Assembly (NCBI GenBank): GCA_937625935.1 | Contig: OW569348.1 | Span: forward strand, 372,001 to 436,000 | Direction of reading: 5' to 3' | Source of the DNA: Tetramitus jugosus | Taxonomy: Eukaryota; Protista; Heterolobosea | DNA length: 64,000 bases | Shown: piece after piece, positions 52,033-60,497 of the stretch | Layout: each line of letters opens with the position of its first letter | Position numbering within the stretch: the first letter of the stretch is position 1 | Position numbers and translations under genes: made by a program | Notes under the pieces: generated by a model | Databases searched by the model: none | What the model was told of the DNA's origin: nothing | The model's input: the letters and a program-made list of their open reading frames with translations, nothing else

Positions 52033-52597
52033 CTAGCATTCTCTTTCGATATGTGCGATTGAGTGGAACCTCTGAAAACTTGGAATGAAAGAAATCTTTG
52101 CTATACTCTCTGGTACTCCCTAATATTGACTTTCATCATGATTATAGATTATTTGTTTTGATAAGTATTACTCTAACAAGTGAGGGCCAGAAAGAGTTAA
52201 CAAGCACACTTACAACTTCGAGACCTGATTCAATCTCAGATCTGGTAATGTCTATCAAATCGACTTGTTTGGATAAAATAGTATCTACACTCTGATGAGC
52301 CACATCTATGGTTCTTACAAGTTTCTAAGTCAATTGTTAATACAGTTGTGTTCGTCAATTGTCGGATCGCATAAGATCAATACAAACCTTCAATCCATCT
52401 GGTATATAGGGCTGCAACTGCTTAAACAAGTAATTCTTGTCTCTGGTTACAGGAAAGGAGTGAACGGCATAGCTCACATGATCTTCCATCTCCTTGTCTA
52501 ACAGTTTTAGTGCTTCGATACCCCTTCGAATCATGTTTCGATTCTCTTCAATCTTCTTTTGAGCATCTTGGTATTCCTTTGTGGTCTCTGTGCTCAT
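52033..52597 (-). CDS. Small multi-exon hypothetical protein, divergent from SMCHD1 (3' end uncertain)
   Basis: ATG 52597 MSTETTKEYQ...DGLK, GTTTGT donor, TAG acceptor into KLVRTIDVAHQ...SGLEV, GTAAGT donor at ~52213. The frame of the last exon is ambiguous. Confidence 0.45.
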
Positions 52598-52769
52598 GAT
52601 TGATTCCAAGAAAAACTGTAGTTGTGATCAGCTGACGAAAACAAGTTTCTCCCACTTTGTTCAAAAAAAAAGTCGAACTCTTGTTGTGTCGCGCAAAATC
52701 GAAACAACATCAATCACCCAGTTTGAATATACAAAACAACAACGGTAACATTACGATAACAACAACACC

Positions 52770-55700
52770 ATGAGTCTCATGTTTGACGATGAAGATGACA
52801 TTACTCCAACAACAAAAAGAACGAATCATAAGAATCATGATGCTGAAGAAATGGGTGACGGGGAAGATGATCGCCTTTTCAACGACGTGGACGAAATCAC
52901 GAGCAGTATCCTCATGAGTCAACAAAAGAAGAAACGACAAGCATCCAAGAAATCAAAACCGTCACAGACTCAGAAATCATCATCGTCCACACAACAAAAA
53001 TCATCAAAGAGAAGGCGAAAGAACAGTGATGATGATGATGACATGAATTTGTTTGGTGAAGATGTTGCTAGTGCATCAACAGCAACAGCAACAACTAGAA
53101 CAGCAAGAACAACAACACAACATAACAATAATGAAAAGCATAGTAGTAAAAAGAGGAAAAAAGATGATGTGATTGTTGATTATGCACCTGATGTGATTGA
53201 TCTGGATGAAGTTGTCACAATGATTCGAATTGTCAATGCTCATACGAATCAGTCGTTTACCATTGAAAAACCAAGGCGATTCTCACAACTCGAAGAACAA
53301 ATGTGCAAGTTGTTCCAAATTAGACGAAAAGACATTGAACAGATTAGTAATTTGATGGACTGTGATGTGAAGAGTGATTCACAATTGATGAACGAATCAA
53401 CAAACACAATTTTATTGTATCTAAAGGGTGGTTCCTCACAGAATTCATCTCCTTCTACTGCGACTGCAGTCACAGCGACAACTACAGCAGCAGTTACGAC
53501 AACAGAAGCCAAAACAAAAGTGACAACAGAGGCAGACATTATGCCTCACGTCAATATTTTGATTCATGGTGGAGATGAATACGATTTTATTACTGCATTG
53601 GCGGAATTGATCGACAATTCCATACAAAACACTTGTATGAACAGTGGCGAGCGAATTATTGATATATTTATGGATAAAACTGTGAGAGAAAATGATCAAG
53701 AAGAGTACAAACTGCACATTTGGGACAATGGAAGAGGAATGGATTATAATGGAGTAGTGGAATGGGCCCGTATGGGAGTCACTCGACCTCCGCCCATCAA
53801 CAAGGACATGTTGCTCAGTATGCCCAAGAGCCGAACTGACATGTATTTAACCAATGACTTCTCTCGTTATGGTGTCGGAAGTAAGAAGGCCATATTTAAT
53901 CTGGGAGATCAAGTGACAATGTGCTCTCGGGCACGAAATCAAAGACTAGTTACAGAAACCACGCTATCGAAAGCCAAGCTAGAAGCAGACTTTGAGCGTG
54001 GAAAGCAAGCTCAGTGGAAAATCAATGTGGATTCACGTACACCGAGCGAACAGGAAGCAAATCGACCAAGTTTTACTCACATTACGATTTCCAATTTAAA
54101 GGAAGTGTATGTCGCAAAATACGATTCAGCTACAGTGAGAAGACAACTCGGTCATATTTATCATTATTATTTATTTGGTCCCAAAGGAAATAAGGGCCGG
54201 GATTTGGAGAACGATCACACTGAAGATGAAGAGGAGGAGCGAGATATCAAAGGGTATATGCGTAATGTTACGATACGAGTTGATGGAAAGTCTATAAAGA
54301 GCAAACCAGAAAACGATCTGGAGTCCATGTACTTGCAACTGGGTGCTAATCCTTGGACGTTCGATTTGAGAGTGACAGCTACTGTCAGAGATTTTGACAC
54401 GGATGGAATTACACAGGTGAGTCAAGCTAGGAATAAGATTCAAAGCAACGTAAAAGGGGTCTTGCTCTATTTCCCATATAGAAATGGCAAGGAGACTCTT
54501 CCAATCCCGAATCAATCAGTGTATGATGACAATCTTGATGAAATACCTCTCAGTGAAAGAGATCCCGGATTTGAATGCTTCTGGAACGGGCGTCTTCTGA
54601 GTGGTGAAAAATCAATTAAGAATTTTCCATTTATGATCAAAGACAAAACAAGGGATATACCTGATGTGTGCTATCGTCGTATCAAGGGTATGCTGTTTCT
54701 GGATTCTGCATTTGAAGTGTCTGCCAACAAGCTTTATCTATGTAAGCAAACTCCTCTGTGTCAAGCCTTAATACAATACGATGATAGAAAACTAAAGTCT
54801 GGATTTAAGAAATGGTTGAAGAGTTGTCATATGGAATATGACGAAGAAATCAAGTACGGTGAAATAGATTCCGAGGAAACAAATAAGCATCAACGAGGAG
54901 TCACATTCTACAGAGATGTTACCTATGGAAGTCAAAAATATCAGGTTGGAACAAAAGTCTCTTTAAGTACACGACCTAAGGTAATAGGAACTATCACTGC
55001 AATATTTCTTGATGCCTCTTCTCAAGATTATGGTTGCTCTGTTGTAATTCAAGAATATAATGGACAAGAGGAGGCAGAAGACGAAGATACTGTAACATCG
55101 ACCCATAATATATCCAAGATTGAGAAGATACTCAGTGCCGCAGACTTTAAAAAAGAAAAGGAGAAGATGTCGAAACGAAAACCTTCTCACATCGATTTGA
55201 TGGAAACAACCAAGGTTCCCATCAACCAAAAACTTCCACCAGTTTCGCCAGTGGAGGCCGGATTCGTACTCAAATATATTACTGTCGGCATTTTCTGTGG
55301 TGATAACAAAGTTCATACAAAAGATGGTGCCATTACCCTCAAAATCACCAATGAGACAACTCAAAAAGAATATCCAGAGATCACTTCTCATCAACCCATG
55401 GACAAAAGTGGACGCCATTGCTTCAAACCAACAGCCTTAATTCCAAAGTTTATTGAAGCTGGAAAGTATATCTTTGAATTTTCATCAGACAAATTGAAAT
55501 CCAAGCTCTATTCTTTGGTTGTCACTCCAGCTGCTCCACATCACCTATCCCCAACAGACTGTACAGATTTAGAATTAAGCTTAGGAATACCAAGCACAAT
55601 TTCAAGTCTTAACTTGGCTGATCAATATGAAAACAAAATCGATCTAGCTGATGTTTCTGTTAGTGCAAAGGAGGTTGTCGTCAATATTTCAACTGATACA

Positions 55701-58700
55701 CTAACTCTCAGCAATGAATATGTGGTATCAATTGAGGAGAAATGGATTGTTGTAAATAATGTAATTGTTACTGGTGGAACTCTCAACGGGGAATCGAGCG
55801 CTTCAGCTCAGCTTCTGCTTTCGTACGGTCAACTCGAGCAAAAGTTGCGTATTCCTGTCTCCATAAAGCCTGGAATACCAAAAAAGCTCGAGTTTACTGC
55901 AGCGACGAGAGATCAAGTGAGTAGTAGTCCTGTTGTCAGAGAAGTTATCAAAATGGAATTGTATGCCGTCGACTCATGGAACAACAAAATATTTAACTCT
56001 GGTAATGATACGTTGCTTAAATTAAGAGCAGAAGGTCCAGACCTGGAATCTTCTTGCGTTGTGTCATTGAATGAAAAAGGTTTATTCGAGTTTGTTGGTG
56101 AAAAAACGCTGGTCATTCGCGAGGATACAACTAAAACGGAGGAATACAACATTCAGTTAACGTTCGTACTCTTGGATAGCGATGACTCAATATGTATCTT
56201 TGATAACAAACCCGTCAGCTCGTCAGTCAGACTCACAGTCTCGCCTGGATCTCAACTAACTCCCTCTGCTATCAAGATATATCCCAGAAGTGGGCAGGAA
56301 TCATTTGTGAAATCTACAACAACGTTCAGCGCAAATATTGAAGCAGTTGTGAGTGAGGAACTCTCAGAATGGAGACTTCAGCTCCTGGATCACAATCGAG
56401 ATGTAATGACAAGTTTTAACGGAATCTGTTTACCTTCTTGGGATAAGAGCAAGTGCATTGTTACGAATGGCGAATGTAAATTGCCTGTGTTCGTCATTCC
56501 CACAGTTCACGATAAGAAAACAGAACTTCGACTTTCATTTCGTCCAAACGAAGAAGACGAAGACAACTCTTTCATATATCGAATGGAGGTGACCTCCATC
56601 ATCGGGAAGCCAGTTAAATTGAAACACAAGCAGAAAGGAAAGAAACAAAAGATAGTCAAGAGTTGTTGCGAGTCGTTCCATATTGACTTCACTCTCCAAG
56701 ATACGTTCGGTAATGAATACGATATGCAAAAGCATCATGAGAGTCATGAAGAGGTAGCACTGATAAGTCCTATTGTAACTCTTGAGCCTGTCGAGAAGGA
56801 TGCAGGAAGCAATGTTATCCCAATGAATCAAGAGAATATGGAGCTAAGAATAACATCAGAAGGTGTGTGGCGACTTCAAAATGTTCAGTTTAAGGGACCA
56901 AAAGGTCAATATGTGCTTTCTATTAAGGATTCGGCCAAAATTGCCAAGTCAGCGAAAGTGAACTTTGAGTTAAATGCCGGTCCTCCAGTATCCATCAAAG
57001 TGAATGATCTGTCTTCTCCTACCTTTTCTGTAATCAATTACGGTACGCTGCCAACATTGACTGTCGCTGCCTATGATGAATATGGTAATGTTGTGTCACT
57101 GGATGAATCAGCTGCCATCAATATGGATGACTCTAGTGGATTTGAGATATTACATTGCACCGGTAGCTCCGCTGCTTCAATGGAGTCAGATGATCAGGGA
57201 CGTTACGTGATACCACAACTCAGAGTAATTGGCGCACCAGGAAAACACAAGTTTACATTAGAGTTTGAAAAAATTGAACTCCAGATTGATATTGCGATCG
57301 ACCTTCAGCCATCCCCTTTCCATCCAACAACAATCGAAATTCTGAACAAGATCTCCAAGCAAGTGTGTGCCGGCACTACAATCGGTCCCTTTGAAATTAT
57401 GGTTAGAGCAGAGAACGGACAAAATACAAGAACACCTAGACCTGTTGTTCTGGAAGTAGAGGCTCCCGATGAAAAACGCATACATACATCCATACCTCCA
57501 CATACACAGGTCACACAAGACTTTACGTACAAGTTCCCGGACAGCGAGAAGTTTATCACAAAGTCTGGGCCATATCGATACAAGTTCTATGCTGATTTGG
57601 GTGATTTGCCTTATGGGTCCCAGTTGAACGAAGACAAAGTCGTTCAAGAAATGGCCTTCATTGTGACTAATGGTGCACCATCAAAGATTGATACCAGACC
57701 AACCGACTTCCAACTGCCAGCCGTTACGAACTCGGATGATCCTTCGCGAATGACATTTTTTGAGGAACTAACTGTCGTTGTAGTTGATGACTATCACAAT
57801 ATTGCTACAGATTGTACGGGAATTGTCAGCCTGTCTGTTGAGTCAACAAATGGTGAATCAGCAAATGTTCCGCTTCTAGAGGGACAACTACAAGTCGAGA
57901 TTCAGAATGGAAGAGCAAAGTTTAGAGATATCAAGCTGAAACCTAATAGTGGTAAATCAGGACTATACAAGCTGGTATTCTCGAGTGACGATTTGAACTC
58001 GAAAGAGCTCGAATTTTGCTTTACTGATGACAGTGTACTGCTAGAGAAGCAAAACAAGTTGCACCAAAAGAGATTAAAGATTCTCGAAAAGATAACTGAG
58101 CAGGAGAATACTCTAGAGCAAGCAAAGATTAGATATGAAGAAGCATCGAGATTACTTTCAAACTACGACAGAGAAGTCACTCATATAGGAGAAGAGTTGG
58201 AACAATTAAGTCCTGATTTTAAGAACAAAGATTGGCAAACAGAGAACATTGACAAATTGATTGTATCCGTGAAAAAGAAACTACTGTCCAAGAAGAAAAA
58301 GTCTCAAAGTATTCGTTCGGCCAAGTTTGGATTGGAGGACAATCCCTCTTTGCAACACGTCTTAAAATTGAAGGAGCAAGATGGCGAATCGAGCGATATT
58401 GTAGGTATTTTGGCTGATTTAGGCTTTGTCGAGGATGAAACATTGGACAAAATTATATCCAAGCAGTTTGGTGCATTGATGCAGCTCGTCATTGTGAATA
58501 ACCGTGTAGCAGCTGATAAGCTGAAGAAACAAATGGAAAAACTGCCGAAAATAACAATCTTGCCACTAGATAACATGGCGATGGAAGTGAAGCAGGACAA
58601 CAATGGTATGTGTTTGCTTGAAGATCTAAGCAAGTTCTCTCATAACGGAGAGGATGAGACAAATGATGCAGAAGAAAACGGATTCATTGGCTACGTGTGT

Positions 58701-59531
58701 AATATGATCCAACTACAGAGAGAACACATCCATCTACGACCTGCATTCTTTACCATTGTTAAGGACTGCGCAGTATTTAAAACATATGATCTTGGAATGC
58801 AGTTCCGTAGACAGAGACTATACGCGAAGAAGCGATGTCCAAAGATTATAACACTCGATGGTCAAACCATTGAATCCCAAGGTTTTATTTATGCAGGAAA
58901 GGACAATAGTGCGTTCCCATATCGCTTTGGACAATTGTCTCTGTCCTCAGATCCCTACTTCACGAATCTGAATATGAGAGAAGAAAAGCTGAATCAAATG
59001 AAGAAAACATTAGAAAAGCGCAGAATATACTTTGAAGGTGAATACGCTGAGGCCGAGAACGAATTTAAGCAGATTGAAAAATCTGTTCGAAAAGAGCTGA
59101 ATGATTGGAAGCAGAAGCATCACATTCTTCAAGAACGATTACGAAAACTGTCCATGGGTGGAACACACATTGAAGAAGTGGAAGACGACATCGAAGTTGA
59201 TGACTCCGACAAAATAGTTAACAATAGTATGAACGACGATGAACTACTGGACTCTCCACCTTCGAGTGCTAAAAGAAACAAGAAATCAAAAGCAAAGAAG
59301 GCCTCGCCCACCGAAAAAATATCAGGTAAGAAACGCTCGTCGCGCAGCCGTCCTCGCTCACCAGATCTGTTCGCTGAGGAGCCGGGAGGTGACGAAATTA
59401 CAGAATTCAGTGATGTTGAGGATCAAGTTGAGAATTGGAGTTCAGACGATGATCACAAAGCGCCATCCTTCACTCCTACGACTAAAGCCACAAGGTCACA
59501 ACCCAAACGTAAAAGATCAAGACAGAATTGA
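52770..59531 (+). CDS. SMCHD1: SMCHD1 orthologue (UBL - GHKL ATPase - transducer - Ig-like repeats - coiled coil - SMC hinge)
   Basis: IMPHVNILIHGG..ALAELIDNS, IWDNGRGM, DFSRYGVGSKKAIF, LGHIYHYYLFGPKGN, FECFWNGRL, CYRRIKGMLF..FEVSANKL, WLKSCH..YD. Hinge: GILADLGFV..KITILPLD..KIITLDG..I.SQG. Confidence 0.92.
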   Translation: MSLMFDDEDDITPTTKRTNHKNHDAEEMGDGEDDRLFNDVDEITSSILMSQQKKKRQASKKSKPSQTQKSSSSTQQKSSKRRRKNSDDDDDMNLFGEDVASASTATATTRTARTTTQHNNNEKHSSKKRKKDDVIVDYAPDVIDLDEVVTMIRIVNAHTNQSFTIEKPRRFSQLEEQMCKLFQIRRKDIEQISNLMDCDVKSDSQLMNESTNTILLYLKGGSSQNSSPSTATAVTATTTAAVTTTEAKTKVTTEADIMPHVNILIHGGDEYDFITALAELIDNSIQNTCMNSGERIIDIFMDKTVRENDQEEYKLHIWDNGRGMDYNGVVEWARMGVTRPPPINKDMLLSMPKSRTDMYLTNDFSRYGVGSKKAIFNLGDQVTMCSRARNQRLVTETTLSKAKLEADFERGKQAQWKINVDSRTPSEQEANRPSFTHITISNLKEVYVAKYDSATVRRQLGHIYHYYLFGPKGNKGRDLENDHTEDEEEERDIKGYMRNVTIRVDGKSIKSKPENDLESMYLQLGANPWTFDLRVTATVRDFDTDGITQVSQARNKIQSNVKGVLLYFPYRNGKETLPIPNQSVYDDNLDEIPLSERDPGFECFWNGRLLSGEKSIKNFPFMIKDKTRDIPDVCYRRIKGMLFLDSAFEVSANKLYLCKQTPLCQALIQYDDRKLKSGFKKWLKSCHMEYDEEIKYGEIDSEETNKHQRGVTFYRDVTYGSQKYQVGTKVSLSTRPKVIGTITAIFLDASSQDYGCSVVIQEYNGQEEAEDEDTVTSTHNISKIEKILSAADFKKEKEKMSKRKPSHIDLMETTKVPINQKLPPVSPVEAGFVLKYITVGIFCGDNKVHTKDGAITLKITNETTQKEYPEITSHQPMDKSGRHCFKPTALIPKFIEAGKYIFEFSSDKLKSKLYSLVVTPAAPHHLSPTDCTDLELSLGIPSTISSLNLADQYENKIDLADVSVSAKEVVVNISTDTLTLSNEYVVSIEEKWIVVNNVIVTGGTLNGESSASAQLLLSYGQLEQKLRIPVSIKPGIPKKLEFTAATRDQVSSSPVVREVIKMELYAVDSWNNKIFNSGNDTLLKLRAEGPDLESSCVVSLNEKGLFEFVGEKTLVIREDTTKTEEYNIQLTFVLLDSDDSICIFDNKPVSSSVRLTVSPGSQLTPSAIKIYPRSGQESFVKSTTTFSANIEAVVSEELSEWRLQLLDHNRDVMTSFNGICLPSWDKSKCIVTNGECKLPVFVIPTVHDKKTELRLSFRPNEEDEDNSFIYRMEVTSIIGKPVKLKHKQKGKKQKIVKSCCESFHIDFTLQDTFGNEYDMQKHHESHEEVALISPIVTLEPVEKDAGSNVIPMNQENMELRITSEGVWRLQNVQFKGPKGQYVLSIKDSAKIAKSAKVNFELNAGPPVSIKVNDLSSPTFSVINYGTLPTLTVAAYDEYGNVVSLDESAAINMDDSSGFEILHCTGSSAASMESDDQGRYVIPQLRVIGAPGKHKFTLEFEKIELQIDIAIDLQPSPFHPTTIEILNKISKQVCAGTTIGPFEIMVRAENGQNTRTPRPVVLEVEAPDEKRIHTSIPPHTQVTQDFTYKFPDSEKFITKSGPYRYKFYADLGDLPYGSQLNEDKVVQEMAFIVTNGAPSKIDTRPTDFQLPAVTNSDDPSRMTFFEELTVVVVDDYHNIATDCTGIVSLSVESTNGESANVPLLEGQLQVEIQNGRAKFRDIKLKPNSGKSGLYKLVFSSDDLNSKELEFCFTDDSVLLEKQNKLHQKRLKILEKITEQENTLEQAKIRYEEASRLLSNYDREVTHIGEELEQLSPDFKNKDWQTENIDKLIVSVKKKLLSKKKKSQSIRSAKFGLEDNPSLQHVLKLKEQDGESSDIVGILADLGFVEDETLDKIISKQFGALMQLVIVNNRVAADKLKKQMEKLPKITILPLDNMAMEVKQDNNGMCLLEDLSKFSHNGEDETNDAEENGFIGYVCNMIQLQREHIHLRPAFFTIVKDCAVFKTYDLGMQFRRQRLYAKKRCPKIITLDGQTIESQGFIYAGKDNSAFPYRFGQLSLSSDPYFTNLNMREEKLNQMKKTLEKRRIYFEGEYAEAENEFKQIEKSVRKELNDWKQKHHILQERLRKLSMGGTHIEEVEDDIEVDDSDKIVNNSMNDDELLDSPPSSAKRNKKSKAKKASPTEKISGKKRSSRSRPRSPDLFAEEPGGDEITEFSDVEDQVENWSSDDDHKAPSFTPTTKATRSQPKRKRSRQN

Positions 59532-59561
59532 TTCTTTATCAATAATTGGGAGTGAATTCCC

Positions 59562-60497
59562 TCAGAGAATAAATGGCACTACAGCCCACCTTCTCTTTAC
59601 TTTGCCTTGGGTTGAATCCTCTTCTAACTTCAAGTATGACTGGTGTGTCTGCCATCCTGTAAATGCCAAATTCGTACAGACGAATACAACCATCAGACAG
59701 AGTGCAACAGTTTGCAAGGACATAGAGAAAGGGAGCCCTACCAGAATTGCAACAACAAAGCAAGAATATAGCATAATCTCTGCACAGTAATGTGGGCATG
59801 ACAAATAATTGTACCAGTCGCCGTGACCAAACGGTGACTGATATTGTTCCTTCAATGTTCCATCACTCATCTTGACCTTCTTTTTCTCCAGATTTGCCAA
59901 TATCCAATGGCAGTTGTATTGATGCTTTGATATATACGCGAACACTACTAAGAACAAGCCGTACAAAACAATTCTGACAGGGCGTGAGGATACTGAAAAG
60001 TGCTCCTTGACTTCAAGACTTCCAAGAAGGATCGTTGGACAGGACAATACATAGAAACCAATTCCAGCAAGCGACACGAGTATTCGGACTCTGGAACCAG
60101 GTCCTTTACGGGCAAACTTGTGCACACAGAAACATTCGTACACTCTCCGTAATAAATGAGCTTGATAGCATAGTGAAAAGAAGGTGAAGCCATGTTGGAA
60201 CATGAGGCACATGTTGTAAACACTGGCTAACACGTACATGAATTGCCAGTGGAAAAACTTTGGAATGTGCAAGTCCCAGAGCAAAATTCGTCGAAGGAAT
60301 TGCTTACTTGAATTGCTCGCTGGTGTACTCTCATCAGTCGACTCCCTTTGACCATAGTTTAAGAATTGAGAGTAATCAGGCCACAGAAATCGCAGCAGAT
60401 AAGCACAAATAACAACAAGCCAACCAATCACAACCAAAATAGAGAATAACCTCTCCTCGATTCGAAAACAAAAGAGATCTTTGATTGACGATACCAT
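59562..60497 (-). CDS. SRD5A3: Polyprenol/polyprenal reductase (SRD5A3/DFG10-like, steroid 5-alpha-reductase family)
   Basis: FLNYG, HLLRRVYEC, HQYNCHWILANL, YQSP..GDWYNYLSCPHYCAEIMLY, NLAFTG..THQSY, RWAVVPFIL; hydrophobic. Confidence 0.88.
   Translation of the reverse strand: MVSSIKDLFCFRIEERLFSILVVIGWLVVICAYLLRFLWPDYSQFLNYGQRESTDESTPASNSSKQFLRRILLWDLHIPKFFHWQFMYVLASVYNMCLMFQHGFTFFSLCYQAHLLRRVYECFCVHKFARKGPGSRVRILVSLAGIGFYVLSCPTILLGSLEVKEHFSVSSRPVRIVLYGLFLVVFAYISKHQYNCHWILANLEKKKVKMSDGTLKEQYQSPFGHGDWYNYLSCPHYCAEIMLYSCFVVAILVGLPFSMSLQTVALCLMVVFVCTNLAFTGWQTHQSYLKLEEDSTQGKVKRRWAVVPFIL

Follow-up and report, generated by a model that had tools for sequence, protein, structure and literature searches.

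A full-length member of the ancient SMCHD1 family in the heterolobosean Tetramitus jugosus

SMCHD1 is a large chromosome-organising protein, known in mammals for silencing the inactive X. Several described protein groups share parts of its architecture. MORC2, MORC3 and MORC4 carry a GHKL + S5 module that dimerises on ATP, and they are without a UBL, an Ig-like array or a hinge. SMC1-6 and the plant protein DMS3 have the hinge fold with flanking antiparallel helices, but the canonical SMCs have an ABC-type head and DMS3 is without any ATPase. The plant GMI1-like proteins (Tarenaya, Lupinus), of 1369-1639 aa, have a detectable C-terminal hinge. An ancient fusion of GHKL+S5 to a hinge and coiled coil was already noted in a passage of Iyer et al. 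(2008). In this report, our results support the placement of a protein of Tetramitus jugosus as a full-length member of the ancient SMCHD1 family. Its domain order, from UBL to hinge, equals that of vertebrate SMCHD1 (ATPase module 6mw7, hinge 6n64), although there is no X inactivation for it to serve in an amoeba. The gene is probably a single, vertically inherited and intact SMCHD1/GMI1 orthologue in this Naegleria/Acrasis-related heterolobosean soil amoeba, and one that appears in RNA libraries.

The window that we analysed is a stretch of 64,000 nucleotides of contig OW569348.1. One ORF of 2253 aa without an internal stop spans its positions 52770-59531 on the + strand (ORF list and translation), confirming the intronless frame proposed in an earlier, sequence-only reading of this DNA. 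An in-frame TAA sits 7 codons 5' of the ATG. The gene lies on a long assembly contig among tightly packed neighbours and is single-copy, being the one match to PF22899 in the whole 26.35-Mb genome. Its features are as follows.

52770..59531, + strand: whole gene, one 2253-aa ORF including the stop codon, no intron detected
52770..53204, + strand: N-terminal low-complexity region, aa 1-145 (composition and motif scan)
53205..53429, + strand: ubiquitin-like (beta-grasp) domain, aa ~146-220 (AlphaFold model and HHalign)
53517..54179, + strand: GHKL ATPase domain, aa ~250-470 (Pfam HATPase_c_3 and 69-sequence alignment)
54267..54839, + strand: SMCHD1-type ribosomal-S5-fold transducer, aa ~500-690 (Pfam PF22899)
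54840..55178, + strand: BAH-like domain, aa ~691-803 (HHalign to SMCHD1 BAH 571-688)
55179..58022, + strand: array of ~120-aa beta-rich modules, aa ~804-1751 (Ig-like by homology)
58029..58394, + strand: ascending coiled-coil arm, aa ~1754-1875 (AlphaFold helices 65-124, 135-156 and 170-186)
58398..58952, + strand: SMC hinge domain, aa ~1877-2061 (profile, phmmer and Foldseek matches)
58953..59156, + strand: descending coiled-coil arm, aa ~2062-2129 (AlphaFold helix 373-440, 68 residues)
59157..59528, + strand: C-terminal tail, aa 2130-2253 (alignment of seven heterolobosean C-termini and motif scan)

The low-complexity extension of 145 aa and the charged tail of 124 aa set the protein apart from vertebrate SMCHD1. 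A motif scan finds the basic clusters KKKR, KRRRK and KKRKK in the former, which may act in the manner of a nuclear localisation signal, and KRNK and KRKR in the latter. An acidic motif of the tail, at ~aa 2205-2225, is kept across heteroloboseans in the alignment of seven C-termini.

The ubiquitin-like segment that had been proposed from the letters alone is well founded: AlphaFold models aa ~151-218 as a beta-grasp (strand-strand-helix-strand-strand) with a pLDDT of about 95, and HHalign pairs rodent SMCHD1 22-101, the UBL, with aa 146-216. A Pfam search gives no match there. The GHKL motifs that had been recognised likewise hold. HATPase_c_3 matches aa 271-405 (2.5e-12), and the catalytic E279, the Mg-binding N283, D319-x-G321-x-G323 and G368/G370/K372 are all present; in an alignment of 69 sequences they correspond to E147, N151, D184, G186, G188, G236, G238 and K240 of SMCHD1, in columns that are invariant or nearly so. 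The SMCHD1_S5 model (PF22899) matches aa 516-688 over profile positions 2-167 of 168, at 2e-36 and with 125.8 bits where the cut-off is 27. This transducer is modelled with a pLDDT mostly above 85, and its R608, R637, K654 and W682 are invariant across the family; the first three, like the catalytic residues, are shared with the vertebrate protein. The BAH limits of SMCHD1 and its DNA-binding lysines K591 and K668 have been described (bioRxiv 10.64898/2026.02.05.704097), and both lysines are kept, as K706 and K783, in the HHalign alignment. The N-terminal model as a whole (pLDDT 85.5, pTM 0.85) finds the four chains of 6mw7 as its best Foldseek matches, at 3e-29, and phmmer finds the same solved ATPase chain at 2.9e-33 over aa 254-696. 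Further, the four blocks that the sequence-only reading had named as nearly identical to human SMCHD1 were verified against 6mw7 (...HIYHYY..GPKGN, FECFWNGRL, F.VS.NKL, WLK.CH..YD); they are columns that are invariant across the whole family.

The middle of the protein contains at least five mutually homologous modules of ~120 aa, with module-against-module HHalign probabilities of 63-94% and a common D-x-x-G-N motif at aa 951, 1068, 1311, 1436 and 1673. A profile alignment places this array collinear with the middle of animal SMCHD1, and its last module appears as beta strands in the AlphaFold model of the C-terminal part. Of the Ig-like, beta-rich middle claimed earlier, the repeated beta-rich modules stand; the Ig fold is suggested by leads, namely atlas leads to Ig_SMCHD1_6th, filamin and invasin folds and the precomputed Ig_SMCHD1 Pfam families carried by close homologues.

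The hinge is real but divergent. The Pfam SMC_hinge model does not detect it in this protein. A profile of the seven heterolobosean C-termini matches the SMCHD1 hinge 6n64 (1.3e-13) in addition to SMC hinges, and phmmer, queried with aa 1810-2060, reaches the hinges of vertebrate SMCHD1 (3e-6). In the C-terminal model (pLDDT 90.7), two long helices surround the hinge; the ascending arm is made of a 60-residue helix and two shorter ones (pLDDT about 90), and the arms measure about 60-70 residues, as against about 50 nm in canonical SMCs. The modelled hinge gives TM values of 0.79-0.81 with SMC hinges (rmsd 3.2 A for the Thermotoga hinge), and its top 50 Foldseek matches are all SMC, DMS3 or SMCHD1 hinges. 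The hinge and coiled coil first seen in the letters are therefore predicted as folds as well.

Like that of vertebrate SMCHD1, this hinge is flanked by long helices, and it is predicted to homodimerise. Three runs yielded a score of 0.71, with 0.00 for the best control, a difference that may stem from solved hinges already known to the model. The runs had at least 98% of their contacts in common, with a partner pLDDT of 82 and predicted contacts at aa 1922-1939 and 2036-2046. Among eukaryotic proteins, 17 of the 29 solved as one-chain pairs attained that mark, as against none of 30 solved as single chains. Seven arginines of the mouse hinge are implicated in nucleic-acid binding (R1789, R1790, R1796, R1799, R1848, R1867 and R1869; PMC7458401). 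One of the seven is kept (R1848, as R2013), with Thr and Glu at the positions of R1867 and R1869, the alignment of the linker arginines being uncertain because of an acidic insert in the T. jugosus hinge. The hinge core has a pI of 5.97; for animals, a dictyostelid and a plant the values are 8.4-9.2. This acidity and the loss of arginines suggest that one mammalian DNA-binding mode may be missing.

Homology to SMCHD1 extends along the full length of the protein. A profile of it and its nearest relatives aligns with animal SMCHD1 in a single collinear stretch of 1740 columns (HHalign, E 2.4e-128) that takes in UBL, BAH, middle and hinge, and BLASTP against animal SMCHD1 is collinear at both ends. 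The plant GMI1-like proteins, which are shorter and whose branch is very long, can be aligned across 788 columns (E 3.7e-30) comprising GHKL, S5, the BAH-like domain and the first Ig-like part, with the UBL not among the aligned parts; phmmer finds them at 4e-12 to 2e-10 and the animal proteins at 1e-30 to 1e-34. In the family tree, whose groups follow taxonomy, the T. jugosus protein nests inside a Naegleria/Willaertia-type clade with 97-100% support. Amoebozoans, malawimonads, cryptophytes, a glaucophyte, a foraminiferan, a choanoflagellate, animals and the plant proteins also belong to the family, the last as a branch of their own (100% support). ATPase-module identity is 25-28% to animal SMCHD1 and 23-26% to the plant proteins, and an affinity of the heterolobosean clade with animals (p 0.341) or with plants (p 0.113) survives the AU tests. 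The idea of an ancient SMCHD1 is thus sustained by full-length homology and a eukaryote-wide family. The label "animal-like" was overstated, since the protein nests among heteroloboseans, animals and plants are about equally distant from it in the ATPase module, and the AU tests leave both groupings standing. The names SMCHD1 and GMI1 seem to designate two lineages of a single eukaryote-wide family.

We infer that the protein is an ATP-driven, hinge-dimerised chromatin or DNA protein. By analogy with the mammalian work on SMCHD1, two chains would be joined permanently at the hinge, and the N-terminal heads, helped by the UBL, would form a dimer once ATP is bound and separate when it has been hydrolysed, with E279 as the putative catalytic base. 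DNA would be held mainly by the BAH-like domain and the first Ig-like module, a region that retains two of the lysines with which the mammalian protein binds DNA. A smaller share may fall to the hinge, given its acidity and the loss of most of the arginines used for DNA binding in mammals. The protein could work in the nucleus by bridging or compacting chromatin under the control of ATP, and its likeliest targets would be repeats, transposon islands or damaged DNA.

The chromatin setting in which it would act was surveyed across the genome, as the earlier reading had proposed. Three Pre-SET/SET proteins, candidates for H3K9-type methyltransferases, and several chromodomain proteins were found. 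LRIF1, Chromo_shadow, DNA_methylase and Tet_JBP had no genome matches, in searches of which three out of four were also blank for their controls, so that absence is unproven. With HP1-type chromoshadow, LRIF1, DNMT and TET unmatched, the mammalian recruitment routes cannot simply be transferred to this organism. Further, the protein would act independently of cytosine methylation and LRIF1, both apparently missing from the genome.

A role in DNA repair has been proposed for plant GMI1 and reported for human SMCHD1. The main job of the T. jugosus protein might accordingly be double-strand-break repair or recombination instead of heritable silencing, a possibility that we entertain tentatively. 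It is favoured by the presence of GMI1-like proteins in the family, by the heterolobosean-plant grouping that the AU test left standing, by the accumulation of SMCHD1 at damage sites (PMC4004971) and by the missing mammalian-style silencing routes in a genome where neither cytosine methylation machinery nor LRIF1 was detected. Yet the sequence offers nothing that separates repair from silencing, and the two roles are not mutually exclusive. Given the H3K9-type methyltransferase candidates and chromodomain proteins, a role in heterochromatin is equally possible.

It seems to us very improbable that the ORF has lost its function and is decaying or silent. RNA-library contigs may include DNA; nonetheless, such contigs turn up in four independent soil metatranscriptome studies and are collinear with the gene over 52729-58599 with zero joints. 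The 40 listed differences between gene and contigs include 34 synonymous ones, and second codon positions show no difference at all. Indels between strains occur in multiples of three, and one environmental RNA contig has 3-nt in-frame indels in the region of aa 1-145. A stop-free frame of 6.8 kb and the retention of all catalytic residues also speak against decay.

We give as little weight to the view that a MORC-family protein, or some other GHKL protein, acquired a hinge on its own and gave rise to this one. The SMCHD1 and MORC GHKL cores are indeed related, and the family profile matches MORC4, MORC3 and MORC2 at 1.8e-9 to 3.8e-4. However, these matches extend over the GHKL core alone, and Hsp90 is matched at least as well. 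A single-sequence search of the PDB returns SMCHD1 chains alone, with no MORC chain at E <= 0.01, and in Foldseek the first match after 6mw7 is MORC3, at 2.6e-12. The score of the SMCHD1-specific S5 model and the 1740 collinear columns likewise contradict a MORC identity. Morc6_S5 has no match in the genome, and Pfam finds no MORC-type S5, CW zinc finger or other reader domain in the protein. A canonical SMC was also rejected as its identity: Pfam gives no SMC_N or ABC match, and a GHKL ATPase takes the place of an ABC-type Walker A/B head split by a long coiled coil. The genome holds six canonical SMC hinges besides this one.

Contamination by, or recent horizontal transfer from, an animal, which the short blocks nearly identical to vertebrate SMCHD1 could suggest, can hardly be entertained, since both the tree and the identity values refute it: the blocks are family-wide invariant columns, the ATPase module shares just 25-28% identity with animals, the protein is most closely related to those of Naegleria and Willaertia and to an environmental protein, all in that well-supported clade, and the gene sits on its long contig among close neighbours.

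Public databases already contain orthologues from Naegleria gruberi, N. lovaniensis, Willaertia, Cavenderia, Polysphondylium and Guillardia, those of Naegleria and the dictyostelids with automatic annotation. The sequence-only reading had held that prior description of orthologues would lessen the novelty of the gene; with these deposits and the fusion noted in 2008, it is lessened. The Naegleria and Willaertia orthologues, named "predicted" or "hypothetical", share 47-49% identity with the T. jugosus protein in the ATPase module and 33-35% along the entire sequence, and the environmental protein, P0001, shares 72% and 52%. The heterolobosean orthologues are collinear with it from the UBL to the tail, the acidic C-terminal motif included. 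Their hinges vary: that of Naegleria reaches the Pfam SMC_hinge threshold (1.6e-8), whereas those of T. jugosus and P0001 do not, and Naegleria retains an Arg corresponding to mouse R1867, a residue replaced by Thr in T. jugosus.

The 2253-aa protein of Tetramitus jugosus (the query) belongs to the SMCHD1 family from its ubiquitin-like (UBL) domain to its hinge. Its gene is located as follows:

Window 52770-59531, + strand: SMCHD1-family gene, one uninterrupted reading frame (2253 codons).

The frame is preceded, seven codons 5' of the ATG, by an in-frame TAA; the convergent gene downstream ends 30 bases beyond the stop codon. Head-to-head with the gene, ~160 bases upstream of its start, is an 84-aa ORF (window 52355-52609, - strand). 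When the genome (26.35 Mb, 56 contigs) was searched with the SMCHD1 S5 model, this gene was the sole match.

Pfam recognizes two parts of the query: HATPase_c_3 at aa 271-405 (2.5e-12) and SMCHD1_S5 at aa 516-688 (2e-36; 125.8 bits against a cut-off of 27). A phmmer search of 177,635 distinct solved chains matched only 6mw7, the ATPase module of SMCHD1 (2.9e-33, query 254-696), and the four near-identical SMCHD1 blocks named in the sequence-only reading are present in that alignment. BLASTP pairs the query with vertebrate SMCHD1 in two collinear blocks (256-830/116-717 and 1397-2050/1245-1882, query first). Further, a profile of the query and nine close relatives aligned with one of 13 animal SMCHD1s in one piece, over 1740 columns (E 2.4e-128, probability 100%) that span the ubiquitin-like domain, ATPase, transducer, BAH-like domain, middle and hinge; profile-profile alignment pairs the ubiquitin-like domain (query aa 146-216) with residues 22-101 of rodent SMCHD1. 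Separate scans of the N-terminus, middle and C-terminus returned nothing above threshold from a copy of Pfam that lacks the Ig_SMCHD1 families, and an ESM Atlas look-up of the middle gave sub-threshold leads only (best score 0.81). Five modules of the middle, centered on aa 951, 1068, 1311, 1436 and 1673, are mutually homologous in register (HHalign probabilities 63-94%) and share a D-x-x-G-N motif. Precomputed database annotation names Ig_SMCHD1 Pfam families on close homologs, and the middle of the query fits an array of putative Ig-like domains.

The N-terminal region could be modeled with confidence (aa 140-720; mean pLDDT 85.5, pTM 0.85) from a 69-sequence alignment, and the model has a beta-grasp at aa ~151-218. 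Its four best Foldseek matches are chains of 6mw7 (3e-29, TM 0.52-0.61), with a high rmsd because the domain poses differ; the next match is MORC3, at 2.6e-12. In the 69-sequence alignment, E279 corresponds to E147 of SMCHD1, the catalytic base, whose mutation to alanine (E147A) abolishes activity (PMC7458401). The query also keeps D282/N283, D319/G321/G323 and G368/G370/K372, as well as the family-invariant transducer residues R608, R637, K654 and W682. Conservation of these catalytic and transducer residues leads us to expect an active ATPase.

The presence of an SMC hinge, claimed in the sequence-only reading, is borne out by both a profile match and a modeled fold. Pfam SMC_hinge missed the query's hinge in the protein scan and in the genome search at E <= 1; it does detect that of the Naegleria gruberi ortholog (1.6e-8). 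A profile of seven heterolobosean C-termini matches 6n64, the solved SMCHD1 hinge, at 1.3e-13, and the query's hinge segment alone matches vertebrate SMCHD1 hinges at 3e-6. A C-terminal model (aa 1690-2130; pLDDT 90.7) runs from the end of a beta domain through a 60-residue helix, two shorter helices and a globular hinge to a 68-residue return helix. Its 50 best Foldseek matches are hinges without exception, from SMC proteins, DMS3 or SMCHD1; the Thermotoga hinge superposes with TM 0.79-0.81 (3.2 A), and for 6n64 the score is 1.8e-6. Pairing of two copies of aa 1819-2089 is predicted via aa 1922-1939 and 2036-2046, with a score of 0.71 in three of three runs against 0.00 for the best control, at least 98% of contacts in common between runs, and a partner pLDDT of 82. 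Of eukaryotic proteins solved as pairs of one chain, 17 of 29 attained this mark; of those solved as single chains, 0 of 30 did. Because structures of hinge dimers exist, the pass may show likeness only.

Closest to the query is an environmental protein, at 72% identity in the ATPase module and 52% overall; next come proteins of Naegleria lovaniensis, N. gruberi and Willaertia magna, at 47-49% and 33-35%, respectively. Dictyostelids (~31%) and animals (~29%) are more distant. HMMER, run exhaustively against 1.84 billion cluster representatives, found only 288 family matches at E <= 0.001. Named members include the malawimonad Gefionella, the glaucophyte Cyanophora, the cryptophytes Guillardia and Hanusia, the foraminiferan Nonionella, the choanoflagellate Didymoeca, Protostelium, dictyostelids, and the plants Tarenaya and Lupinus. 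In two unrooted trees (FastTree on 106 rows; IQ-TREE LG+C20 on 47 rows), the query joins its 72% relative (100%) within a Naegleria-type clade (97%), and each labeled group stays together in a single block, the pattern expected under vertical descent. A union of the heteroloboseans with the animal half costs 2.2 log-likelihood units (p-AU 0.341), and a union with plants costs 10.5 (p-AU 0.113); the AU tests reject neither affinity. Plant GMI1-like proteins sit on a very long branch and are shorter than the query. “SMCHD1” and “GMI1” do not pose a real alternative because both are lineage names within one family. The description “animal-like” in the sequence-only reading was therefore an overstatement for a query that lies in the Naegleria-type clade of a family bearing both names. 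Animal contamination or transfer is excluded by that same nesting.

Databases already show how widely the family is spread, a point remarked on in 2008 (Iyer et al.), and the gain from the query is modest. Deposited orthologs exist for Naegleria, Willaertia, dictyostelids and Guillardia, bearing the automatic names “SMC hinge domain-containing” or “SMCHD1 ribosomal S5 domain-containing”, which lowers the novelty of the gene. Our literature search found no paper treating protist SMCHD1 orthologs, and a 2026 preprint describes SMCHD1 as “conserved across vertebrates” (bioRxiv 10.64898/2026.02.05.704097). We regard the query as moderately interesting to those who work on SMCHD1; in comparative genomics it counts as ordinary. 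Conservation of the whole architecture makes small, intron-poor unicellular systems candidates for the study of SMCHD1.

A role in heterochromatin or repair had also been proposed, with a genome search for HP1/LRIF1, H3K9 methyltransferases and DNMTs as one check. Such a search found three large Pre-SET/SET proteins, which are candidate H3K9-type methyltransferases, and a dozen chromodomain matches. The SET proteins have 1089-1250 aa and lie on contigs C34, C24 and C17; Pre-SET is reported in two of them. One chromodomain protein is a candidate HP1-like reader:

Contig C48, 276658-277638: protein of 327 aa, with two chromo-type stretches and without a chromoshadow match.

DNA_methylase (PF00145), DNMT2 type included, had no match in the genome and did match control genomes. 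Tet_JBP, LRIF1, Chromo_shadow and Morc6_S5 also had no match, a weak result given that the control genomes were equally blank. Naegleria has a TET enzyme. The T. jugosus genome may lack cytosine methylation altogether. That the UBL-to-hinge architecture is kept in a Discoba amoeba apparently without this modification argues for a general ancestral function on chromatin or DNA. Six other HATPase_c_3 matches in the genome, stronger than five further ones, are not MORCs: they are MLH1, a PMS-like protein, an MLH3-like protein and three Hsp90s. Contig C13 has two open frames of ~2000 aa, 29 kb apart (360518-360820 and 389682-389954), both of which match HATPase_c_3 weakly and are interrupted by one in-frame TAG; candidate identities are sacsin-like proteins or other GHKL giants, and an intron or readthrough is an alternative.

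Architecture, catalytic residues and hinge fold were observed in the query itself, as opposed to its mechanism, which we transfer from mammalian work (PMC7458401, PMC8286825, bioRxiv 10.64898/2026.02.05.704097). The protein would be a homodimer with its chains joined at the hinge; ATP would bring about engagement of the two UBL-GHKL heads, and DNA held at the BAH and first Ig-like module would stimulate the ATPase. K706 of the query aligns with K591 of SMCHD1, and K783 with K668, the lysine of strongest effect in the human protein (bioRxiv 10.64898/2026.02.05.704097). Both ends of the query carry basic clusters, which suggest a nuclear location. Its biological role may be repeat silencing, chromosome compaction or break repair.

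The hinge core differs in charge between lineages:

Window 58398-58952, + strand (aa 1877-2061): SMC hinge core, acidic in heteroloboseans.

Its pI is 5.97 in the query and 5.9-6.7 across the heteroloboseans (mildly acidic), whereas it is basic (8.4-9.2) in animals, one dictyostelid and one plant. Of the seven hinge arginines implicated in nucleic-acid binding in mouse SMCHD1, the query keeps only R1848. The heterolobosean hinge may be a pure dimer joint. It is conceivable, if on balance rather unlikely, that SMCHD1 is an early-eukaryote machine whose core job requires no cytosine methylation, LRIF1 or dosage compensation, and that the acidic heterolobosean hinge, devoid of nucleic-acid-binding arginines, acts as nothing more than a dimer joint, DNA binding being left to the BAH and first Ig-like module alone. 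If so, the heteroloboseans would be a natural separation-of-function variant for the purpose of hinge DNA binding; their acidic hinge is, in any case, a testable natural variant. An acidic insert occurs in the inter-subdomain linker of the query's hinge, around aa 1955-1972. The otherwise variable C-terminal tail has a short acidic motif kept across heterolobosean orthologs (window ~59380-59450, aa ~2205-2225), which may be a docking or phosphorylation motif.

Many metagenome studies, on groundwater, soil, hydrocarbon, sediment and hot springs, contain DNA nearly identical to window 52500-59700; the organism itself, or strains close to it, is therefore widespread. Near-identical sequence also occurs in soil metatranscriptomes from four different studies. 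Contigs of these four RNA libraries, which can carry DNA, align collinearly along 52729-58599 (95-100% identity) without joints, and thus give no sign of an intron; the comparison covered 6,000 letters and stopped 932 bases before the end of the gene. Third codon positions account for 33 of the 40 best-supported differences and second positions for none; 34 of the 40 are synonymous, the other six being conservative replacements. Indels of the RNA contigs in the low-complexity N-terminus are multiples of three. These facts together amount to purifying selection on the SMCHD1-family frame. One soil metatranscriptome contig begins at window 52729, 41 bases 5' of the ATG, after 16 unmatched letters. 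It carries four in-frame 3-nt insertions within 52806-53140, in the low-complexity N-terminal region, where strains thus differ by whole codons.
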